Both the position numbers and the translations under genes were made by a program. Shown one piece after another: positions 3,524 to 46,845 of a stretch of 64,000 bases of DNA. The DNA is taken from positions 1 through 64,000 of the forward strand of contig CDROCS010006304.1 in the NCBI GenBank assembly GCA_977020255.1, given 5' to 3'. Numbering within the stretch: the first letter of the stretch is position 1; every line of letters begins with the position of its first letter. This DNA is from Obrimoposthia wandeli. Taxonomy: Eukaryota. The notes under the pieces are model-generated. The model worked only from the letters and a program-made list of their open reading frames with translations, searched no databases and was not told where the DNA came from.

Positions 3524-4782
<1,259 letters not shown>

Positions 4783-4794
4783 AATGTATGCCTG

Positions 4795-5037
4795 TTAGTC
4801 TTGCAGTTTTTGCCATTGGGCCTGGGTGTAGGTCTTAATCGTAAGGGCATGTATGCTGCCATCTGCTATTTGTTGCTCAACACATTTGTAAACCAACTGC
4901 TGGCGTTTAACAGGCATTAAACCGGTAAACTGGTCGCTAACTACCGCCACTTCAAAGTTACACCCCTCACCAGCGGTTTCAACGGTGGCACCTTCTATTT
5001 GTGATTCGATAATTTGCTTTACTTCTTGGGCCTGCAT
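4795..5037 (-). CDS. ibaG: BolA/IbaG family protein
   Basis: VVSDQFTGLMPVKRQQLVY..IADGSIHALTIKTYT; directly upstream of murA as usual; ATG at 5037 preferred. Confidence 0.9.
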   Translation of the reverse strand: MQAQEVKQIIESQIEGATVETAGEGCNFEVAVVSDQFTGLMPVKRQQLVYKCVEQQIADGSIHALTIKTYTQAQWQKLQD

Positions 5038-5638
5038 TGATTGCTCCAATGTAATAATTTGTTGAATTAGTGACTTCAAGAGAGGTGAATACAAGCTCTA
5101 TCACCTTCTTCTAGATGCATCTCCCGCTACTGATCGGTAGAGAATTAATCATGAAAAGAGAGCGTGCATCAGCTACTCGTTTGAAGCCACACATTCGTGA
5201 TTTTGTTTTTATGATTGACAAAAAAATATAAATGAAAATGCCGAGTTGAAAGTCGCTAATTCCAAATCGCCACTTTTCTCCAACTATGTCTGAATTGGTT
5301 ATATAATTCTGCCGCCATGACAAAAGATAAACGTGAAACATCTGCAAAAAATTAGGCTGATAATAACCAAATTCTCAGTAAAAGGCGATGGTAGAAGCCA
5401 AAAATGCCCGTATTTGACCTTAAAAAACTATCGACATTGGCGCCTACTCACAGATACAAAATTTACGTTTAATCTTGATGGGGATAAGGCTGACGAGACT
5501 ATTGCTAATAACGCGTACTGATTCGGCTTAAATTTTAACTAAGATCATTTGTTAACCGACACCCTAATGTTCTTAGTGGTTCAAGCAAAGGGCTGGGGCC
5601 AAGGACTGAACACTAACGGAGTGTTATCGCATTTACTC

Positions 5639-33763: not shown

Positions 33764-34234
33764 ATGAGTGGTAATCAACTATTTCGCAGCATCATTGTCA
33801 GTGCTATCGCTGCTGTTCTAATGCCTTTTTTATTAACAAAACTTACTGATGTTAACCTTCCGTCCTTCGATCCTGTAGTCTTGCTTGTTATTTTTGCAGT
33901 GACTATGGCTTGTTGTGCTGTAGCGGGTTTCTCCGCAACTACAGAACAAAATAGCCTTGAGGATTCAAATGCAGATCGTGAAAACGGCGCTGAATACGAT
34001 GACGACGAAGAACTAGAAAATGATGAGCGTGAAACCGGTACTGTTAAATGGTTTAACGTCTCTAAAGGCTTCGGCTTTATCACTAGAGAGAACGGCGATG
34101 ATGTCTTCGTTCACTTTCGTAACATTCGCGGACGCGGCCATCGCTCTCTCAGTGAAGGTCAGCAGGTAAAATTTTATAGCCGTGATAGCGATAAAGGCCT
34201 GCAAGCAGAAGACGTTTCAATATTACGTAGCTAA
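33764..34234 (+). CDS. Cold-shock-domain protein with two N-terminal TM segments and an acidic linker
   Basis: C-terminal [18 protein letters not shown] (RNP1) and DVFVHF (RNP2); two hydrophobic N-terminal stretches; linker [12 protein letters not shown]. Confidence 0.92.
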
Positions 34235-34278: not shown

Positions 34279-35124
34279 TTAAAACAAATCATCTTGCATC
34301 CCCTGAGGCCACAATCGAATAGGTACCAACTCCTCAATTTTTTGCGCTAATAATGTACTAAAATCACATGCTAACTGTGGTGCACTTGCATTATCAGGTG
34401 TGTGAAAGAAGAGATAGGGCGTCTTGCCTTGCTCTAGCCATTTAACGGTTTGATTTACCCATTGCTCGATCTCTAGTTTTGCCAAGTCTTGATCCATAGG
34501 CACGATTAACCGAACCATTGGCTGATTGGCTGTCGCAATAACATGCGTCGGTACTTTAGGCTTCGCATTTAGAGCTTCACGTGTCGCAGTATCATTGAGA
34601 TAGTCATGTTTAAACAATGAACGAGTATCAAAAATCACTCGATTAATGTGATATTTATGTAATAACTGATTAAAGCGCAACTCAATCTCACCTTTCGCAA
34701 AAAAACAAAGATGCCTCACTTCTACCGCGTAATTAAAATCATTGGGCAGGCTTTGTAAAAACAACTCAAGATGATTAAGTGAGCGTCCATCGAAGTATTG
34801 ATCAAGTTGTAACCAAATTAGACCGATTTTGTACTTTAATAACGAAATTCGGTTCAGAAATTCGCTAACCTGCCGTGAACAATGAGTAAGGCGCTGTTTA
34901 TGGGTAATCTCTTTCGGAAATTTAAAGCAAAAGCGAAAGTGTTCATCAATTGTATCATTCCATAAGTGTATGTTTTGCAAACTGGGTATAGCATAGAAAG
35001 AATGATTGCCCTCAACGCAACTAAAGCTTTTACTATAGGTAACTAACGATTGCGTCTGCGCTTTGTGGGAGTACCATTGTGGGTGGTGCCATTGGGCTAA
35101 ACCGAAATATATTTCATGTTTCAT
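34279..35124 (-). CDS. DUF72 family protein (YecE-like)
   Basis: FGLAQWHHPQW, VEGNHSFYA, FRFCFKFPKEITH, YAVEVRH, PYLFFHTPDN. Confidence 0.9.
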   Translation of the reverse strand: MKHEIYFGLAQWHHPQWYSHKAQTQSLVTYSKSFSCVEGNHSFYAIPSLQNIHLWNDTIDEHFRFCFKFPKEITHKQRLTHCSRQVSEFLNRISLLKYKIGLIWLQLDQYFDGRSLNHLELFLQSLPNDFNYAVEVRHLCFFAKGEIELRFNQLLHKYHINRVIFDTRSLFKHDYLNDTATREALNAKPKVPTHVIATANQPMVRLIVPMDQDLAKLEIEQWVNQTVKWLEQGKTPYLFFHTPDNASAPQLACDFSTLLAQKIEELVPIRLWPQGMQDDLF

Positions 35125-35206
35125 CGATAGTACGAGCTACACTTACTGAAAGTTGAGAAAATCAAGTGACAACAACATCAAACGCTGCGATAGGTATTAA
35201 CTAGTT

Positions 35207-35977
35207 ATGGATTTTGCATCACTCATCGGGATTGTATCCGGTATTGCACTGATTGTATCCGCTATTTTCCTCGGTGGCTCGGCAGATGTTTTTGTCAATA
35301 TCCCAGGAATTATGATCGTAGGTGGTGGCACCCTCGCCGCAACACTACTCACAGTACAAGTCAAAGATATGCTCAACGCGTTCAAAGCCGCATATTTTGT
35401 ATTCACCCGTGACAAAACTAATGCATCAGATATGATCGACACCATGATTGAGCTGAGTAAAATTAGCCACCGTCACGGCTTGTTAAAAATGACACATATC
35501 AAAACCGATTCAAGAGTACTTAAAAGGGCCTGCAACCTATTAGCCGAAGCCGCTTCTGAACAGGTCATACGTAATACATTACAAAACGAAATAGACTCTC
35601 TTATCGCCCGTCATTTTGCGATCCAAGACGTTTTCAAACGCATGGCCAATTATGCCCCCGCATTTGGCATGCTAGGCACCCTCATCGGTCTTATTCAGAT
35701 GCTAAGTAAGGTGGATAACCCAGAATCCATTGGCCCCTCTATGGCTGTTGCATTACTGACAACGTTTTATGGCTCACTATTAGCTACCATGGTATTTTTA
35801 CCGATAGCTGGCAAGCTTCGCGCGCGCACATTAACCGAGGTTACTAATTTAGAAATTATCCGCGAGGGCAGCATCAGCATTCTCACTAACGATCAATGGG
35901 CTCATGTGTATGAGCAGCTGACCGCTTACCTGCCCGAAAACCAGCGCAAAGCTATTTTTCCTAGCACCACGGAGTAG
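35207..35977 (+). CDS. MotA/PomA-family stator A subunit (Na+-type signature)
   Basis: IMIVGGGT, APAFGMLGTLIGLIQML, IGPSMAVALLTTFYG, LPIAGKL. Confidence 0.9.
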   Translation: MDFASLIGIVSGIALIVSAIFLGGSADVFVNIPGIMIVGGGTLAATLLTVQVKDMLNAFKAAYFVFTRDKTNASDMIDTMIELSKISHRHGLLKMTHIKTDSRVLKRACNLLAEAASEQVIRNTLQNEIDSLIARHFAIQDVFKRMANYAPAFGMLGTLIGLIQMLSKVDNPESIGPSMAVALLTTFYGSLLATMVFLPIAGKLRARTLTEVTNLEIIREGSISILTNDQWAHVYEQLTAYLPENQRKAIFPSTTE

Positions 35978-35979
35978 CG

Positions 35980-36807
35980 ATGAGTAAAGCCATAAAGCTA
36001 CATGAAGACGAAAACGAAAATGGCTGGATAGTTACCTACGCCGATTTAGTGACTCTGTTGTTAGTATTTTTCATTTTACTTTTTTCTATTTCAACGCTGA
36101 AAAAAGAGACATTCGTTAAAACTATTGACGCAGTCAAATCAGCGCTACAAGGTACAGGCGCCGGAACTAAAGTTAAAATAAATGTGGAAAAGGTTGAAAC
36201 GGGAAGCGTACCGACGGATTCCACAGACCCATCCGTTGAAACTGGCGAGAAGGAACAGGCACCCACCGATATTGTCGAACCTATTATTACAACGCCTTTT
36301 GCTATTATCCCTCCAGAACCGAGTAAAGATAAGGAAAAAGAGGCAAATAAAGCCTTAGCTAAGCTTTCTAAATCACTGCGTCAGCTGGTAAAAACGACAG
36401 GTAATCAAGACGACGCTAAAATATCGCCACCCAAAGATGGTAAGATTGTGATTAATTTACGAGGGTCACTCTTCTTTGATGCCGGATCTGCTCAGTTTAA
36501 ACGCCAGGCAATGCCGATTATGGATGGGATAGGAAATATTCTAAGAAAAAATAATACTTTTAATTTGGCGATTGGCGGGCACACTGACAACATACCGATC
36601 AGTACGACCCGCTATCCATCAAATTGGGAGCTCTCGGCTATTAGAGCAACCTCTGTTTTGAGGTACTTTATACGCGGTGGCATGAATCCAGATCGTCTAA
36701 CAGCGACTGGCTATGGGGAATCAGCGCCACTGGGAGCAAACGACACGGATGATCAAAGAGATATTAACCGACGAATAGAATTTGTACTTGAGCGTAGACA
36801 GATATGA
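35980..36807 (+). CDS. MotB/PomB-family stator B subunit with OmpA-like peptidoglycan-binding domain
   Basis: WIVTYADLVTLLLVFFILLFSIS with the conserved Asp; GHTDNIPI, SNWELSAIRA, ATGYGE, NRRIEFV. Confidence 0.9.
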   Translation: MSKAIKLHEDENENGWIVTYADLVTLLLVFFILLFSISTLKKETFVKTIDAVKSALQGTGAGTKVKINVEKVETGSVPTDSTDPSVETGEKEQAPTDIVEPIITTPFAIIPPEPSKDKEKEANKALAKLSKSLRQLVKTTGNQDDAKISPPKDGKIVINLRGSLFFDAGSAQFKRQAMPIMDGIGNILRKNNTFNLAIGGHTDNIPISTTRYPSNWELSAIRATSVLRYFIRGGMNPDRLTATGYGESAPLGANDTDDQRDINRRIEFVLERRQI

Positions 36808-37169
36808 AAAAACCATTATTTGAGTTAGATGGACTAGATGATACTAACCGTGGCGAGTATCGCCTTTACCCTAATGACGAAGACAACATTAAATTAATTA
36901 TCGCGGGTAAGGCCGTTGAGGTGGATAACATCTCCGCTAACGGTATTGCGTTTAAGTTTATTGGCAATGTAAAGAAGGCCACCTACAAAGTGGTACTTGA
37001 ATTTACTTTAGAAGAGCAGCACTCTATTGAATGTGCGGTCAAAGTATTACGACAAGCTCCTCCTATTTACAGTGGCACCCTTGTAGATCTCACTCCAAGC
37101 GACTCTAAACTGATAGCCCACTTGATTATTAATAGCCAAAAGCGTGCAATCCGTCGCGGCCTGAAATAG
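36804..37169 (+). CDS. Single-domain PilZ protein (putative c-di-GMP receptor)
   Basis: RxxxR (RGEYR) followed by (D/N)xSxxG (NISANG); ATGA overlap with motB. Confidence 0.75.
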   Translation: MKKPLFELDGLDDTNRGEYRLYPNDEDNIKLIIAGKAVEVDNISANGIAFKFIGNVKKATYKVVLEFTLEEQHSIECAVKVLRQAPPIYSGTLVDLTPSDSKLIAHLIINSQKRAIRRGLK

Positions 37170-37236
37170 AGAAGAGTCACTGTAGCTCTTGAAAACACCT
37201 TACTGCCTCTTTTCAGGGGCATTAAACAATTAACAC

Positions 37237-37264
37237 TTGCGGTATCTCTTTTAGCCTGTATACT
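37237..37264 (+). promoter_or_regulatory. Stable-RNA-type sigma70 promoter, tRNA unit 1
   Basis: TTGCGG-16 bp-TATACT followed by the GC-rich discriminator tcgcccca. Confidence 0.65.
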
Positions 37265-37341
37265 TCGCCCCACAGTTTGAGGCGAAGCGCTGATAGAGAT
37301 TATAAACACTTTAATTTCAATTAGTTCTTTTCTTTATTTGA

Positions 37342-37358
37342 TGCGGGGTGGAGCAGCT

Positions 37359-37392
<34 letters not shown>

Positions 37393-37418
37393 TGGTTCAA
37401 ATCCAGCCCCCGCTACCA
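37342..37418 (+). tRNA. Initiator tRNA-fMet (CAT), copy 1
   Basis: 77 nt, anticodon arm TCGGG-CTCATAA-CCCGA with three G-C pairs, unpaired 1:72, encoded CCA. Confidence 0.97.
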
Positions 37419-37444
37419 CAAATTTTGAACTGGTTTTTTATTGG

Positions 37445-37461
37445 TGCGGGGTGGAGCAGCT

Positions 37462-37495
<34 letters not shown>

Positions 37496-37521
37496 TGGTT
37501 CAAATCCAGCCCCCGCTACCA
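37445..37521 (+). tRNA. Initiator tRNA-fMet (CAT), copy 2
   Basis: Identical to copy 1. Confidence 0.97.
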
Positions 37522-38125
37522 AAAACTTATCGTTACTGTTAAACCCATCTAGCTACAAATCTCTATTTTAAATTTTTTCTTTCATCTATTTAACTATTTT
37601 GACCTTTAATTTTTATTAATTAATCGCTAATAGATTATTCCCTCTGCCAACCCTATCAATAAAAAAACGCACTCTATTAAGACTTCTTTTAAAGAAGCGA
37701 CGCAATATCTACGCTGGCATTTGTATATCACTGCTCGAGCTTAAACCCGCCCCTCTAAGTAATAATGTTTTATACTCAGACTTAAAATTTTCAAAAAATA
37801 ATAATTAAATTTTCTACTAAACCCAAACTATGTGCTTAGTCGTTGTGCAATGTTTTACTCAAATCGCACTAATACAGTAGAATAATTCGCGGTGACCAAT
37901 TAACGAAGAGAAAATGTATCCCATCACTCAAAAAGCAGCTGAGCCCTTTACTTTATCTACTTTACTTCGAAAATTGTATTTAGCCTGGAAGACCATACCT
38001 ATAAATCGTTAAGGACATCCCTATCAGCTTAACTCTATCAACCCTGAGATAGCCCTTAACTCTACACTCTACACCTGAAAGCGCATCATATCCGCCCTGA
38101 TAACTAAATTAGACTAAGCTAATGC

Positions 38126-38153
38126 TTGCAGTATCCAGTCTACCCTGTATACT
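38126..38153 (+). promoter_or_regulatory. Stable-RNA-type sigma70 promoter, tRNA unit 2
   Basis: TTGCAG-16 bp-TATACT followed by tcgctcca. Confidence 0.65.
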
Positions 38154-38231
38154 TCGCTCCACAGTTTGAGGCGAAATACTGACAGAAATTATAAACACTT
38201 TAATTTCAACTAGTTATTTTACTTTATTTGA

Positions 38232-38248
38232 TGCGGGGTGGAGCAGCT

Positions 38249-38282
<34 letters not shown>

Positions 38283-38308
38283 TGGTTCAAATCCAGCCCC
38301 CGCTACCA
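38232..38308 (+). tRNA. Initiator tRNA-fMet (CAT), copy 3
   Basis: Identical to copy 1. Confidence 0.97.
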
Positions 38309-38334
38309 CAAATTTTGAACTGGTTTTTTATTGG

Positions 38335-38351
38335 TGCGGGGTGGAGCAGCT

Positions 38352-38385
<34 letters not shown>

Positions 38386-38411
38386 TGGTTCAAATCCAGC
38401 CCCCGCTACCA
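38335..38411 (+). tRNA. Initiator tRNA-fMet (CAT), copy 4
   Basis: Identical to copy 1. Confidence 0.97.
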
Positions 38412-38680
38412 AAAAACAATCTTTCCACTCTCCCCTATTACTATCCTTTCCCAAAAACATTTAATTTCTATAGAAAACATTTCTCTTATTTCATGCCAAT
38501 TTAAATCATTTATTACCATCACGCCTACCTGCTTATCTACAGCCAAATAGCAGTATACGATTCAATTGACGCTATAAATTCGCTATGCACAATGATAGCT
38601 ATAGCCATTCTATTTAACCTCTTACCTTAGCAAACGACTCAGCTTCAAAGACACATGACTAAGTCGCTTTTTTTGTAAGT

Positions 38681-41033: not shown

Positions 41034-41825
41034 TCAGCGGGTTGCCAAGTAGCGAATCAGCTCGCGCTGAACAGGTAGTAGCCAGCGTTTTTGGCCGTAG
41101 CCTACAAAATTTGGCATTTGCAACACCTCGCAACTAATTTCGTTACCCACCGTTACAGGGGGCGTCGGCAGAAACAGAGGGAGGCCCATCTGTGCTAATA
41201 GCGCTGGCGTTAAACAATAGCGGTTGTCGCTATAATACTCTGGCCATGCATCTGTTATGACGACATCGTAATGACGATCAACTTTCTCTATAAAGTTTAC
41301 ATTTGCTCTCTCACCGTGCTCTGATTTGGCACAACAATGGCTCACTTTTAGCTTTAGTACCTCAGCGAGAGCATACCAAGATTTAAAAACGTTGCTGCAG
41401 GGTCCAAAAAGCAAAATACGAGCACATTTGAGTGAGGGGAATAAAGTCGATAAATAGTAACCATCGGCAAGTACTTCACAGGGGTGTGCCTGGGAGGACA
41501 TGGCATTGATTACTGGCTTTTGGCTCGCTGCGCTAAACTCTTTGAGTCGTTGGTGATTTGCTTCTCTGATAATGTAAACATCGTAAAAAGGGTCCAGATA
41601 CCCTGCCAGATCGATAGCACTTTCATCTGTTTTCAGAACATTAGGCAACTCTACATAGTGTGCACCTAATTGTGAGAACGCCTGTAAAAAAGGAGTGCGT
41701 GTGCGTATGCCATTTCCTTCAAAAGACCACGCTATATTTACCGGCAAACAAGCACTGGAGCCTTCAGCGACTGCCATCCATATCTGACTGATATCCTTCG
41801 CAGTTAAATCATTTATATCAATCAA
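41034..41825 (-). CDS. Aspartate/ornithine carbamoyltransferase-fold protein with divergent motifs
   Basis: FEGNGIRTRTPF (cf. FxxxSTRTRxSF), YIIR, PVINAMS..HPCEVLAD, DVVITDAW, FLPTPP..GNEIS. Confidence 0.75.
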   Translation of the reverse strand: MIDINDLTAKDISQIWMAVAEGSSACLPVNIAWSFEGNGIRTRTPFLQAFSQLGAHYVELPNVLKTDESAIDLAGYLDPFYDVYIIREANHQRLKEFSAASQKPVINAMSSQAHPCEVLADGYYLSTLFPSLKCARILLFGPCSNVFKSWYALAEVLKLKVSHCCAKSEHGERANVNFIEKVDRHYDVVITDAWPEYYSDNRYCLTPALLAQMGLPLFLPTPPVTVGNEISCEVLQMPNFVGYGQKRWLLPVQRELIRYLATR

Positions 41826-41904: not shown

Positions 41905-43590
41905 TTAGCTGACTTTGAATTGAATACTGTTTTGATGAAGCGTCGCCGCTAAGGCAGACAGCTCTTCACTTGCCTGGGTTGTCTGTTTGGTTGTCTCCGA
42001 GTTCTCTTGAGCTATATTACGAATACTGGTCACATTTCTACTAATCTCAAGTGTGACCGCGCTCTGCTGCTCCGCTGCGGACGATATTTGATAATTGTAA
42101 TCCGTAATAGACTTCATTGCGTGCGCTATTTTTTCCAGTGCGCCACCCGTTTTTGTCGCCATGCCTAATACTTCGCCAGCATTTTTCTGACTGCTGTGCA
42201 TCATATTCATCGCCGCTGTCGAGCCGCTTTGCAAACTCATAATCAGTCCACGAATTTGATCAGTTAACCCTTGTGTACGACTGGCAAGATCACGTACTTC
42301 ATCGGCAACCACTGAAAAACCTCTCCCAGCCTCACCTGCGCGCGCCGCTTCTATCGCCGCATTAAGTGCAAGTAGGTTAGTCTGCTCAGCAACCGACTGT
42401 ATGGTATCAAGCGCTTTAGTTATCCCATTTGAATGCGAATGTAACTGCTCAACAACGGTATTGGTCTCATTAACACTGTTTTCTAAACGACGCATTGAAT
42501 CAAGGTTGTCGGCAACTATTTTCGCCCCCTCTCCAACTGCGGTGTCCGCATCGCTGACCATTTGTGATGCGCTGTAAGTCACTTTAGCAACATCAGCGGC
42601 AGTAGATGAGAGTTCATCAATTGCTGTCGCGACTTGATCTGTTTCATTGTACTGTTGCGCAACCGCCACTGTGTTTTGGGTTGATATCACGGAGAGTTCT
42701 TCAGAGGCTGCCGCTAACTGAGTGGAGCTACTTACTACACTACTAATACAATCATTAAGTTTATTAAACAGAACGTTAAGATCGCGCCCTAAAGCGGATA
42801 TTTCACTATTACCACTGTCATCTAAACGTAATGTCAAATCTAAATCTTTGACTATTCGAGAGATAACATGACGCGCAGCACCCACTTTATCCGTAATGTT
42901 ACGTGAGATATAAAAACCGACAAATAAAATTATCAATGTCGCTATACTGCCAATAATCACTACTTGCTCAATCGCCGCTTTTCGCTACCACGCAGCACAA
43001 AGCAGACTTGGGTAAATACTTCTAATTGCCGGTTAATGCTCTAATAGCTGATTAAACTATCTTCCTCCTTAGAAACCTCCTCAGCCAATTCTTCCGCCGT
43101 ATTCACTTTATTATCAGTTAATACGTAGGATTTCGCCGATGCCTCATAGCTACTATGATGCTCATCTAGCTGCTTTAGCTCTACTTCAAATTGATGCAGC
43201 TTAGTACGATCTTCCTCATTCAAAGCATGCTCTTCACTTTTCTCAATAAATGCTTCCGCCGTTTTAAAATTACTATCCACTTCTTGCGATAAACGCTCAA
43301 ACTTTTGCCTCGCGTTATCAAATTTAATCTCTGCATGGCCAGCCTGGGACTTCGATTGTTTTAAAATACTCGCTCAAGGTCTGTCAAATTCGATAGATTG
43401 CTCGACCAGTTTCAACGCAACTTAAAGCACAGATTGTGGTGAGGGGGATATCCTCTTCCGCAATACTGATGAGCTCTTGCTTAATAGAAAGTAACTGCAC
43501 TATTGTGCTTGAGATAACTAACAACAACGCGATCAGCGCCATTGAGCAAAGCGCAAACAGCTGCTGCTTTATATTTAGTTTGTTGAGTAA
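41905..43590 (-). CDS. Methyl-accepting chemotaxis protein; 5' half frameshifted (artefact or pseudogene), start approximate
   Basis: Signalling domain [32 protein letters not shown] and HAMP in 41905..42960; sensor fragment 43041..43280; TM1 [34 protein letters not shown] read manually near 43590-43440. Confidence 0.85.
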
Positions 43591-45759: not shown

Positions 45760-46845
45760 TTAATATTCACTACATTTAACGCAGTTACGCCCCGCCTTTT
45801 TAGCGCAAAATAGCGCGTCATCAGCCTTTTTAAACAGTAACTCGCTCTCCTGGCCGATATGATGACTAGCGACACCAATACTAATGCGAACAGATTGATT
45901 CTGATACTCGGTCGCTGCAATCACTTGCCGATAATTTTCCGCAATAATACACGCTTGTGCGAGCAGTACATTGGGCAGTAATACCACAAATTCTTCCCCT
46001 CCATAACGGGCACAAAAATTACCTGCCGCGGTGTTTTTACTTAAAATAGCACCTACTTCAGCCAGTATTTGATCGCCAAACGCATGACCATGAATATCGT
46101 TGAACGATTTAAAATGATCAATATCCATCACGATTAAACTAAGTGGTTGGCCAGATTGATTACTATGACTGGTGACCTGCTGTAACTCTTGGTTAAATGC
46201 GCGTCTATTTTGTAGCGAGGTTAGCTCATCTGTTGATGACGTCAATTGTAACTGACGGTTTAATCTGGCCAATTCAACTCTTGAGCTTTGCAACTGTGCT
46301 TTTTCTCTCTCCAATTGAGCGACTGACTGATGCAGTTTTAAAAGCTGCATGATTTGTCGCGCGAGCATATTTAATGCATTAATCTGTTCCATACTGAGCG
46401 TTCGTGGCTGGGTATCGATGACACAAAGCGTGCCAAGAGCAAGATTATCCTCAGTCAACAGCGGTACGCCTGCATAAAACCGAACGAAAGGAGTATTACA
46501 GACCATACCTATGTCGCGAGTAATCGGATTCTCCAACGTATCAAAAACAATAAGTGGTTGATTACTCAAAATAGTACGCGAGCAAATAGCATAACCTCTG
46601 GGTACTTCGGTCGGGCCAATATTATGGCGAGCTTTATGCCATTTTCGTGTCTCATCGACAAAGGCAACCATCGCCTTTTCAACACCGCAAACATGTGCCG
46701 CTAGCTTTGCAATATCATCATAGCTAGTTTCATCAAGGGTATCTAAAATCGCATACTGATGCAGCGCAGCTAATCGGGAAGCTTCATTATCTGGTAGGGG
46801 GAAATCATATTTTTTACTCATAGCTAAACTGTAGATTTTGTCCAC
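45760..46845 (-). CDS. GAF-GGDEF diguanylate cyclase
   Basis: EASRLAALHQYAILDT, RFYAGVPL..GTLCVID (GAF); TDELT, DIDHFKSFND.HGH..GD, RYGGEEF, ADDALFCAKKAGRN. Confidence 0.93.
   Translation of the reverse strand: MDKIYSLAMSKKYDFPLPDNEASRLAALHQYAILDTLDETSYDDIAKLAAHVCGVEKAMVAFVDETRKWHKARHNIGPTEVPRGYAICSRTILSNQPLIVFDTLENPITRDIGMVCNTPFVRFYAGVPLLTEDNLALGTLCVIDTQPRTLSMEQINALNMLARQIMQLLKLHQSVAQLEREKAQLQSSRVELARLNRQLQLTSSTDELTSLQNRRAFNQELQQVTSHSNQSGQPLSLIVMDIDHFKSFNDIHGHAFGDQILAEVGAILSKNTAAGNFCARYGGEEFVVLLPNVLLAQACIIAENYRQVIAATEYQNQSVRISIGVASHHIGQESELLFKKADDALFCAKKAGRNCVKCSEY

Follow-up and report, generated by a model that had tools for sequence, protein, structure and literature searches.

A stator operon that ends in a PilZ gene

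Within the 64,000-nucleotide window analysed here (contig CDROCS010006304.1, positions 1 to 64,000, of assembly GCA_977020255.1 from Obrimoposthia wandeli, a source assembly that is a mixture of bacteria), three consecutive genes on the forward strand encode the A and B subunits of a flagellar-type stator and a small stand-alone PilZ-domain protein. This trio and a candidate element upstream of it are located as follows.

35136–35146, + strand: GCTACACTTAC, candidate upstream element, from its recurrence in related loci
35207–35977, + strand: stator A subunit gene; open reading frame (ORF) of 256 amino acids, PomA/MotA-like, Pfam MotA_ExbB
35980–36807, + strand: stator B subunit gene; ORF of 275 amino acids, PomB/MotB-like, Pfam MotB_plug and OmpA
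36804–37169, + strand: stand-alone PilZ-domain gene; 121 amino acids, isoelectric point 8.7, assigned by its AlphaFold 2 (AF2)/Foldseek fold

The A gene ends with the stop codon TAG at 35975–35977 and is separated by 2 nucleotides from the ATG of the B gene at 35980, while the B and PilZ genes share an ATGA overlap at 36804–36807. Taken by themselves, the 2-nucleotide gap and the 4-nucleotide overlap suggest that the three genes are co-transcribed. The original prediction, made from the DNA letters of the window, had described a tight operon between a DUF72 gene and tRNA genes, and the ORFs, junctions and flanks were found to be as it stated. In the 82-nucleotide gap between the DUF72 gene and the A gene sits GCTACACTTAC; a GCTA(A/C)ACTTAA version of it recurs 5′ of the A gene in most of 12 Nitrincolaceae-type loci, and it may represent the putative −10 region of the operon promoter. 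The window has a G+C content of 44% and contains no N, and the composition of the trio equals that of its flanks.

The A and B subunits belong to the flagellar stator type

The A subunit matched Pfam MotA_ExbB (E 1.9e-25) and aligned without gaps to residues 1–247 of Vibrio alginolyticus PomA (E 2e-45, ~35% identity), so that PomA numbering applies directly to it. In structural comparisons of the Foldseek type, the AlphaFold model of A (predicted local distance difference test score, pLDDT, 74.5) had PomA (8brd) as its best match, with a template modeling (TM) score of 0.74–0.82, and the next 22 matches were all flagellar MotA or PomA chains. The model places cytoplasmic helices at residues 73–90, 92–97, 103–113, 118 onward and 231–241. 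An expanded cytoplasmic domain of the A subunit, a plug with a linker and an OmpA domain separate flagellar stators from generic ion transporters (Puente-Lelievre et al., PMC12505986). All of these features of the flagellar-stator class (FIT, TGI4) of that study are found here: the cytoplasmic domain of A is expanded, with at least four helices at what is the torque-generating interface in that scheme, and B runs from a transmembrane helix carrying D22 through a plug helix and a low-complexity linker to an OmpA-type peptidoglycan-binding domain (MotB_plug, 1.5e-15, residues 8–55; OmpA, 4e-17, residues 165–264).

Three other identities were considered for the pair, namely a Zorya-type anti-phage module, a Tol/Exb-type energiser and a decaying stator paralogue, and together they are very improbable. 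The B subunit does match ZorB profiles, through the shared MotB/OmpA domains; Zorya was rejected because A matches no ZorA profile (PADLOC) and no ZorC/D-like neighbour is conserved. A Tol/Exb energiser was rejected on the weak matches of TolQ/ExbB to the model of A (E ~1e-2, TM score ~0.4), and decay on three intact ORFs with low nonsynonymous divergence and saturated synonymous sites in 12 related genomes (see below).

With regard to the coupling ion, the Na+ site of PomA is built from T158, T185 and T186, residues shared by all Na+ stators, while H+ stators carry Ala at positions 158 and 185 (Hu et al. 2023, PMC10374538). The A subunit of the window has T158 (in GTLIG) and both T185 and T186 (in LLTTFYG), and P151 and P199 of PomA are likewise kept. 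The three Thr residues are invariant in the 121 members of its family (at least ~60% identity), and the same alignment shows A158 and A185 in the H+-type MotC of Pseudomonas aeruginosa and three Thr residues in Vibrio parahaemolyticus PomA. Alignment of B with Clostridium sporogenes MotB, Bacillus subtilis MotB and PomB showed that L33 of its FILLF segment occupies the position that holds Val in the H+-type MotB of B. subtilis, a position that we take, from work on Bacillus MotB/MotS, to be an indicator of ion type. The original prediction was therefore accurate as to the Na+-site Thr residues, the B-subunit Asp and FILLF, all of which are present. With the Thr triad and D22 both in place, the stator unit is probably of the Na+ type, which is well supported as a prediction from sequence.

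The third protein has a PilZ fold and intact c-di-GMP motifs

Against the Pfam PilZ model, the third protein scored 15.8 (E 0.018), below the cut-off of 22.5, and PDB sequences searched with a profile of its family gave no match, so that a fold search was needed for its placement. The AlphaFold model (pLDDT 81) consists of a six-strand barrel followed by a long C-terminal helix. Its top Foldseek matches were all PilZ domains, with Alg44 the best (E 4e-5, TM score 0.65–0.72); the others included a Legionella PilZ-like protein, BcsA, MotI, MapZ, YcgR, MrkH and PlzA. Model and fold search thus agree on a PilZ β-barrel.

The motifs for binding cyclic di-GMP (c-di-GMP) that had been noticed in this protein, RGEYR and NISANG, are strictly kept among close relatives: R16 and R20 of the first and N42, S44 and G47 of the second are invariant in 25 of them. 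A word-based protein search recovered close relatives only, even with a mixed alignment, and the breadth of the family was taken from gene neighbourhoods. Distant members of 14–27% identity also keep these residues. Across 68 family members, the RxxxR and (D/N)xSxxG motifs are kept and a signature in three parts is shared: an N-terminal basic-hydrophobic motif, mostly (M)FWKK (MKKPLFE in the protein of the window), the c-di-GMP motifs themselves, and QK..IR in the C-terminal helix. The residue preceding RxxxR is Asn in the clade of the window and Arg in the distant members; in other PilZ proteins, this residue influences whether one or two c-di-GMP molecules are bound (cf. 3KYG).

The trio is a conserved module

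Pattern searches put the window among metagenome-assembled genomes (MAGs) of Nitrincolaceae and Oceanospirillaceae and the Osedax symbiont Rs2. The gene order plsB, slyX, a membrane-anchored cold-shock-domain gene, DUF72, A, B and PilZ was the same in 12 of 12 genome loci. Across these 12 genomes, A is 85–96% identical, versus 51–66% for the nearby PlsB. Synonymous sites are saturated in each of the three genes, and the number of nonsynonymous substitutions per site (dN) stays low, at 0.03–0.10 for A, 0.09–0.26 for PilZ and 0.11–0.29 for B. Strong purifying selection acts on the whole trio.

Relatives of A with more than 60% identity occur in Neptunomonas, Nitrincola, Marinobacterium, Pontibacterium, Pokkaliibacter, Balneatrix, Motiliproteus, Halopseudomonas and Marinomonas, and also in Thermodesulfobacteriota and other deltaproteobacterial MAGs. 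Gene neighbourhoods revealed the same trio, each time in a different housekeeping context, in Marinomonas mediterranea and Balneatrix, in an unclassified gammaproteobacterial lineage and in a MAG of Thermodesulfobacteriota, whereas one MAG of Halopseudomonas carries just the two stator genes. A metagenome scan, in which the PilZ gene was detected with a family-specific profile, added 80 further loci of 55–91% identity. The PilZ gene lies directly 3′ of B in 58 of them and most of the others end too early, leaving just four loci (L050, L060, L098 and L102) with room and no PilZ gene, besides L047, in which B is also absent. Clustering of all neighbouring ORFs in the metagenome loci revealed no fourth gene conserved across lineages, and a plasmid collection contained no family member, all matches there being below 40% identity. 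The motA-motB-PilZ trio is a dedicated, conserved module of Oceanospirillales-type gammaproteobacteria and Desulfobacterota. A dedicated stator–PilZ module had been proposed from the single window; the pairing in the genome and metagenome loci, in Marinomonas, Balneatrix and Thermodesulfobacteriota, and in Solidesulfovibrio (see below) bears this out.

Several individual loci depart from the common pattern. In L047 (1276–2427), a response-regulator-like gene follows A in place of B. In L060 (9541–9977), a 437-nucleotide gap free of ORFs occupies the position that PilZ has in syntenic relatives, and looks like a recent loss. A sub-lineage of four metagenome loci (L071, L072, L080 and L086) encodes B subunits of ~475–530 amino acids, about twice the usual length; the PilZ gene is still 3′ of B in the three of these loci with room, and L071 ends 30 nucleotides after B. 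Flavobacteriia-labelled MAGs of Polaribacter/Urechidicola (L016–L018, P0140, P0145 and P0154) would have been non-flagellated hosts of the trio, and were taken as cases of mis-binning: their neighbouring genes (orn beside rsgA, recR, lpxC and secA) look gammaproteobacterial, so that these bins are probably contaminated.

The A subunit falls outside characterised PomA

An exhaustive search of 1.84 billion representatives returned 4904 relatives of A. The family of the window collapses to essentially one cluster at 50% identity, and the next relatives outside this cluster are P0163, from Solidesulfovibrio (48%), and P0165 (44%). In a FastTree phylogeny of 156 sequences, the family and P0163 form a clade with a Shimodaira–Hasegawa-like support of 99, which includes neither V. 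parahaemolyticus PomA nor P. aeruginosa MotC. The P0163 locus consists of A, B and a 142-amino-acid PilZ protein of the same family, and is flanked by genes for a nucleoside phosphorylase on one side and for acetyl-CoA carboxylase on the other. Against NCBIfam, the best model for A was PomA (NF006527), with 211 bits against a cut-off of 341, and the best for B was MotD, with 187 bits against 283; the pair stays below the cut-offs of all the stator equivalogs (PomA, MotP, MotA and MotD). Clustering inside characterised PomAB, in a pair that was also the only stator of its genome, had been named at the outset as an outcome that would refute a dedicated module; such clustering was seen neither in the tree of A, with its separate clade, nor with the PomA model.

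This placement bears on whether the operon could encode the main or only stator of the polar flagellum, that is, a divergent PomAB equivalent with a built-in PilZ brake. We consider this quite unlikely, since the tree does not group A with PomA, since its score given above misses the PomA equivalog cut-off, and since it lacks charges at the rotor contact that PomA cannot do without (see below). Several features would suit a main stator: polar stators, Vibrio pomAB among them, typically stand apart in the chromosome, the Na+ signature fits a marine host, purifying selection is very strong, and a Pfam sweep of the 44 larger ORFs of the window, which covered the smaller ORFs in part, showed no second stator. 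On the other side, a near-identical family is present in Halopseudomonas and Desulfovibrionaceae, genera of which are known to carry other stator sets, and members from gamma- and deltaproteobacteria share more than 60% identity, which resembles the pattern of an accessory, transferable module.

Rotor-facing residues are remodelled

For the rotor contact of PomA, Hu et al. (PMC10374538) name one face with R88, K89 and R232 and a second with E96 and D114, and they report that PomA cannot drive motility without the charges of R88, E96 and D114. The corresponding residues, numbered as in PomA, were compared between the family of the window (n = 121) and 139 other representative relatives, with the following results.

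Position 88: His in the window; His in 83 and Arg in 37 of the family; basic in 133/139 of the others
Position 89: Arg in the window; Arg in 113 of the family; basic in 113/139 of the others
Position 96: Thr in the window; Gly, Ser, Ala or Thr in the family, never acidic; acidic in 122/139 of the others
Position 97: His in the window; Asp in 68, Lys in 17, Glu in 13, Asn in 9 and His in 7 of the family; acidic in 35/139 of the others
Position 114: Glu in the window; always Glu or Asp in the family; acidic in 127/139 of the others
Position 232: Ala in the window; always hydrophobic in the family; basic in 75/139 of the others

Representative P0162, which has Arg at position 232 in the wider alignment, is an exception at this site. 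The charge pattern with which flagellar stators pair with FliG is thus kept only in part (R89 and E114). The Solidesulfovibrio sister P0163, in contrast, keeps R88, R89, E96, D114 and R232. Because this sister has both the PilZ gene and the rotor charges, linkage to PilZ must have preceded the loss of E96 and R232, and the module began as a rotor-competent stator.

Other positions are fixed across the PilZ-linked clade and different in other stators, among them S87, T100, C109, S131 and T194. Three further clade-fixed residues, L215, L226 and Y235, lie on the cytoplasmic helix H4, where other stators mostly have Lys, Gln or Glu; this hydrophobic strip may be where the PilZ helix docks.

The altered face raises the possibility that the operon encodes a non-flagellar ion-driven 5:2 motor or a gated Na+ channel, in which the cytoplasmic face of A would serve PilZ and not the rotor, and ion flow would be coupled to or gated by c-di-GMP, for example in envelope or surface sensing or in Na+ entry. 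Other 5:2 motors do have non-flagellar jobs (PMC12505986), and the loss of E96 and R232 with the partial loss of R88 across the family, the clade-specific hydrophobic residues on H4 and the unusual conservation of A relative to PlsB are all in keeping with such a device, as is a trio that is never beside flagellar genes and travels as a three-gene unit through unrelated housekeeping contexts. We nevertheless regard it as rather unlikely, though a rival to be taken seriously: every structural hallmark of flagellar stators is kept, including the plug, which in known stators opens on rotor engagement; R89 and E/D114 are retained; the sister lineage with the same PilZ has the full rotor-contact set; and no candidate output partner is co-encoded. 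In addition, the genera of all named hosts of the trio are described as flagellated.

Comparison with known stator–effector systems

The closest published arrangement is that of MotL in Shewanella putrefaciens CN-32, a stand-alone PilZ protein of 144 amino acids that is encoded 34 bp 3′ of the lateral motAB genes, binds c-di-GMP and regulates that motor (PMC8203827). It is an exception to the statement in the original prediction that PilZ effectors are normally encoded elsewhere, which it weakens. The window shares with it the order motA, motB and single-domain PilZ in the same direction, here with the PilZ gene straight after motB by the ATGA overlap, and intact c-di-GMP motifs (RxxxR and DxSxxG in MotL). 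The two systems differ in that MotL lies at the end of the lateral flagellar cluster and serves a proton-dependent stator, whereas the trio of the window is isolated among housekeeping genes, and its A subunit carries the Thr triad of the Na+ type but no longer the E96 and R232 contacts. FilZ of Pseudoalteromonas is another single-PilZ protein from a lateral flagellar cluster (PMC10304486).

Vibrio PomAB (8BRD/8BRI; PMC10374538) has the same fold, Thr triad, B-subunit Asp, plug, OmpA domain and orphan location. Its residues R88, E96, R232, D85 and D148 correspond to H88, T96, A232, K85 and N148 in A of the window, and, unlike the pair of the window, it has no PilZ gene downstream. Vibrio pomAB is an orphan pair between xseB-ispA-dxs and thiI. 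Because this canonical pair is also isolated, isolation from flagellar genes says little; the location of the trio away from flagellar genes is as had been claimed, and only the suggestion that this is unusual falls away.

In MotCD-FlgZ of P. aeruginosa, MotI of B. subtilis and YcgR of Escherichia coli, a PilZ effector acts on a given stator A subunit in response to c-di-GMP and so switches or brakes the motor, FlgZ through MotC and both MotI and YcgR through MotA. In contrast to the PilZ protein of the window, these effectors carry a YcgR-type domain at the N terminus in addition to PilZ, and their genes lie apart from those of the stator; P. aeruginosa MotC, unlike A of the window, is of the H+ type (A158, A185) and sits in the che cluster. 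That a PilZ protein can be a stator-bound component is shown by FlgX of Campylobacter jejuni, a tetrameric PilZ-fold protein under the MotA pentamer (PMC11725899). FlgX is without c-di-GMP motifs, owes its tetramers to two additional helices and has its gene away from motAB, whereas the PilZ protein of the window has canonical motifs and one C-terminal helix.

The literature that we searched describes MotL, FilZ, FlgZ, MotI, YcgR and FlgX, and no account of the motA-motB-PilZ trio was found in it. The trio is set apart from the MotL/FilZ-type cases by its Na+ signature, isolated location, very wide spread, tight conservation and remodelled rotor face.

Promoter signals and genomic surroundings

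The region 5′ of the A gene was scanned for sigma-28 and sigma-54 promoters in 22 loci. One sigma-28-like site was found (L016, −79), against 0.56 expected from shuffled sequences with up to 2 mismatches; as this count is no more than the shuffles give, it is no evidence for or against membership in a flagellar regulon. The L016 site is a near-consensus sigma-28 promoter, TAAAG-N14-GCCGATGA, ~79 nucleotides 5′ of the A gene (locus position ~5922), and the single sigma-54-like case of the 22 loci is TGGCTTGTATTTTGC in L021, ~74 nucleotides 5′ of the A gene (locus position ~4927). These two sites may hint at lineage-specific wiring to flagellar regulons, as single cases in a set that is not above chance. 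Neither a sigma-28 nor a sigma-54 consensus was found in the window or its clade.

The following genes flank the operon or lie downstream of it.

34279–35124, − strand: DUF72 gene, divergent, upstream of the A gene
37342–38411: four tRNA-Met genes, downstream of the PilZ gene
41905–42960, − strand: protein with a methyl-accepting chemotaxis protein (MCP) signalling domain, downstream of the operon (Pfam)
45760–46845, − strand: GAF-GGDEF diguanylate cyclase, downstream of the operon (Pfam)

The MCP and GAF-GGDEF genes are 5–9 kb 3′ of the operon, and their presence in the window indicates that chemotaxis and c-di-GMP signalling exist in the host organism. The Pfam sweep further identified the housekeeping genes hisDG, mla, kdsD, rpoN, ptsN, mgtE, yhdP, rng, maf, mreBCD, gatAB and plsB, as well as a sigma-54 two-component pair, transporters and metabolic enzymes. 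Among the 44 larger ORFs, with the smaller ones not all scanned, there was no flagellar structural gene, in agreement with what had been claimed for the window.

The tRNA-Met genes are two pairs within a tandem duplication of ~890 bp (window positions 37231–37534 and 38120–38424), the copies of which are 98% identical over 207 nucleotides and 84% identical over the 101 nucleotides preceding these. On the other side of the operon, a gene at 33764–34234 (+ strand) encodes a 156-amino-acid protein that starts with a membrane segment, continues with a very acidic linker and ends in a cold-shock domain, and keeps its place two genes 5′ of the stator operon in 12/12 related genomes. Elsewhere in the window, murA (3524–5094, − strand) looks split: of the 417 positions of the EPSP_synthase model, a 261-amino-acid ORF covers only 31–300, and it is flanked by short ORFs. 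The domain match of an ornithine carbamoyltransferase (OTCase)-like ORF at 41034–41825 is also partial. Together, these two cases suggest either that the assembly contains indel errors or that the reading frames are truly broken.

Proposed role of the operon

Based on these findings, we propose a plausible scheme for the operon. The three genes would constitute a self-contained, vertically inherited module, in which A and B would form a flagellar-type 5:2 stator that is anchored to peptidoglycan, gated by the plug and probably Na+-conducting. The small PilZ protein most likely binds c-di-GMP and would dock on the cytoplasmic domain of the A pentamer. Engagement or torque of the stator would then be switched by c-di-GMP via the PilZ protein encoded in cis, in a scheme like that of MotAB-MotL or MotCD-FlgZ, except that it would be hard-wired in a single operon. 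The most likely reading, which we hold to be an even call, is that the operon provides an accessory stator of the polar flagellar motor whose engagement is switched by c-di-GMP.

Several observations weigh against such an accessory stator. The charges of E96 and R232 are lost and R88 is His in two thirds of the family; as charges that are indispensable in PomA are altered, normal torque generation on FliG is doubtful. A sigma-28-like site upstream of the A gene was seen in a single lineage (L016) and in none of the clade of the window, and no flagellar gene adjoins the trio in ~100 loci. A retooled stator lineage is also conceivable, the cytoplasmic face of which would read PilZ instead of the FliG torque helix, as a non-flagellar device under c-di-GMP control or as a torque-less brake or sensor in motor slots; we think it unlikely. 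If it were true, the stator machine would have been put to a new use, one that has spread among sulfate reducers and marine gammaproteobacteria.

Bacteria retune a running flagellar motor mainly in two ways, by exchanging stators and by braking through c-di-GMP. Effector and stator are encoded apart in the model systems, and are joined here in one highly conserved operon that is common in marine Oceanospirillales-type bacteria and Desulfobacterota. Cultured hosts such as Marinomonas mediterranea, Neptunomonas and Nitrincola should make the trio open to direct tests. In addition, the family presents a natural experiment, with one branch that has the canonical rotor charges and a larger branch without them, both with the same PilZ. 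Comparison of the two branches could reveal how PilZ docks on a stator, and whether conversion of a stator to a brake, to a sensor or to a motor outside the flagellum is possible.

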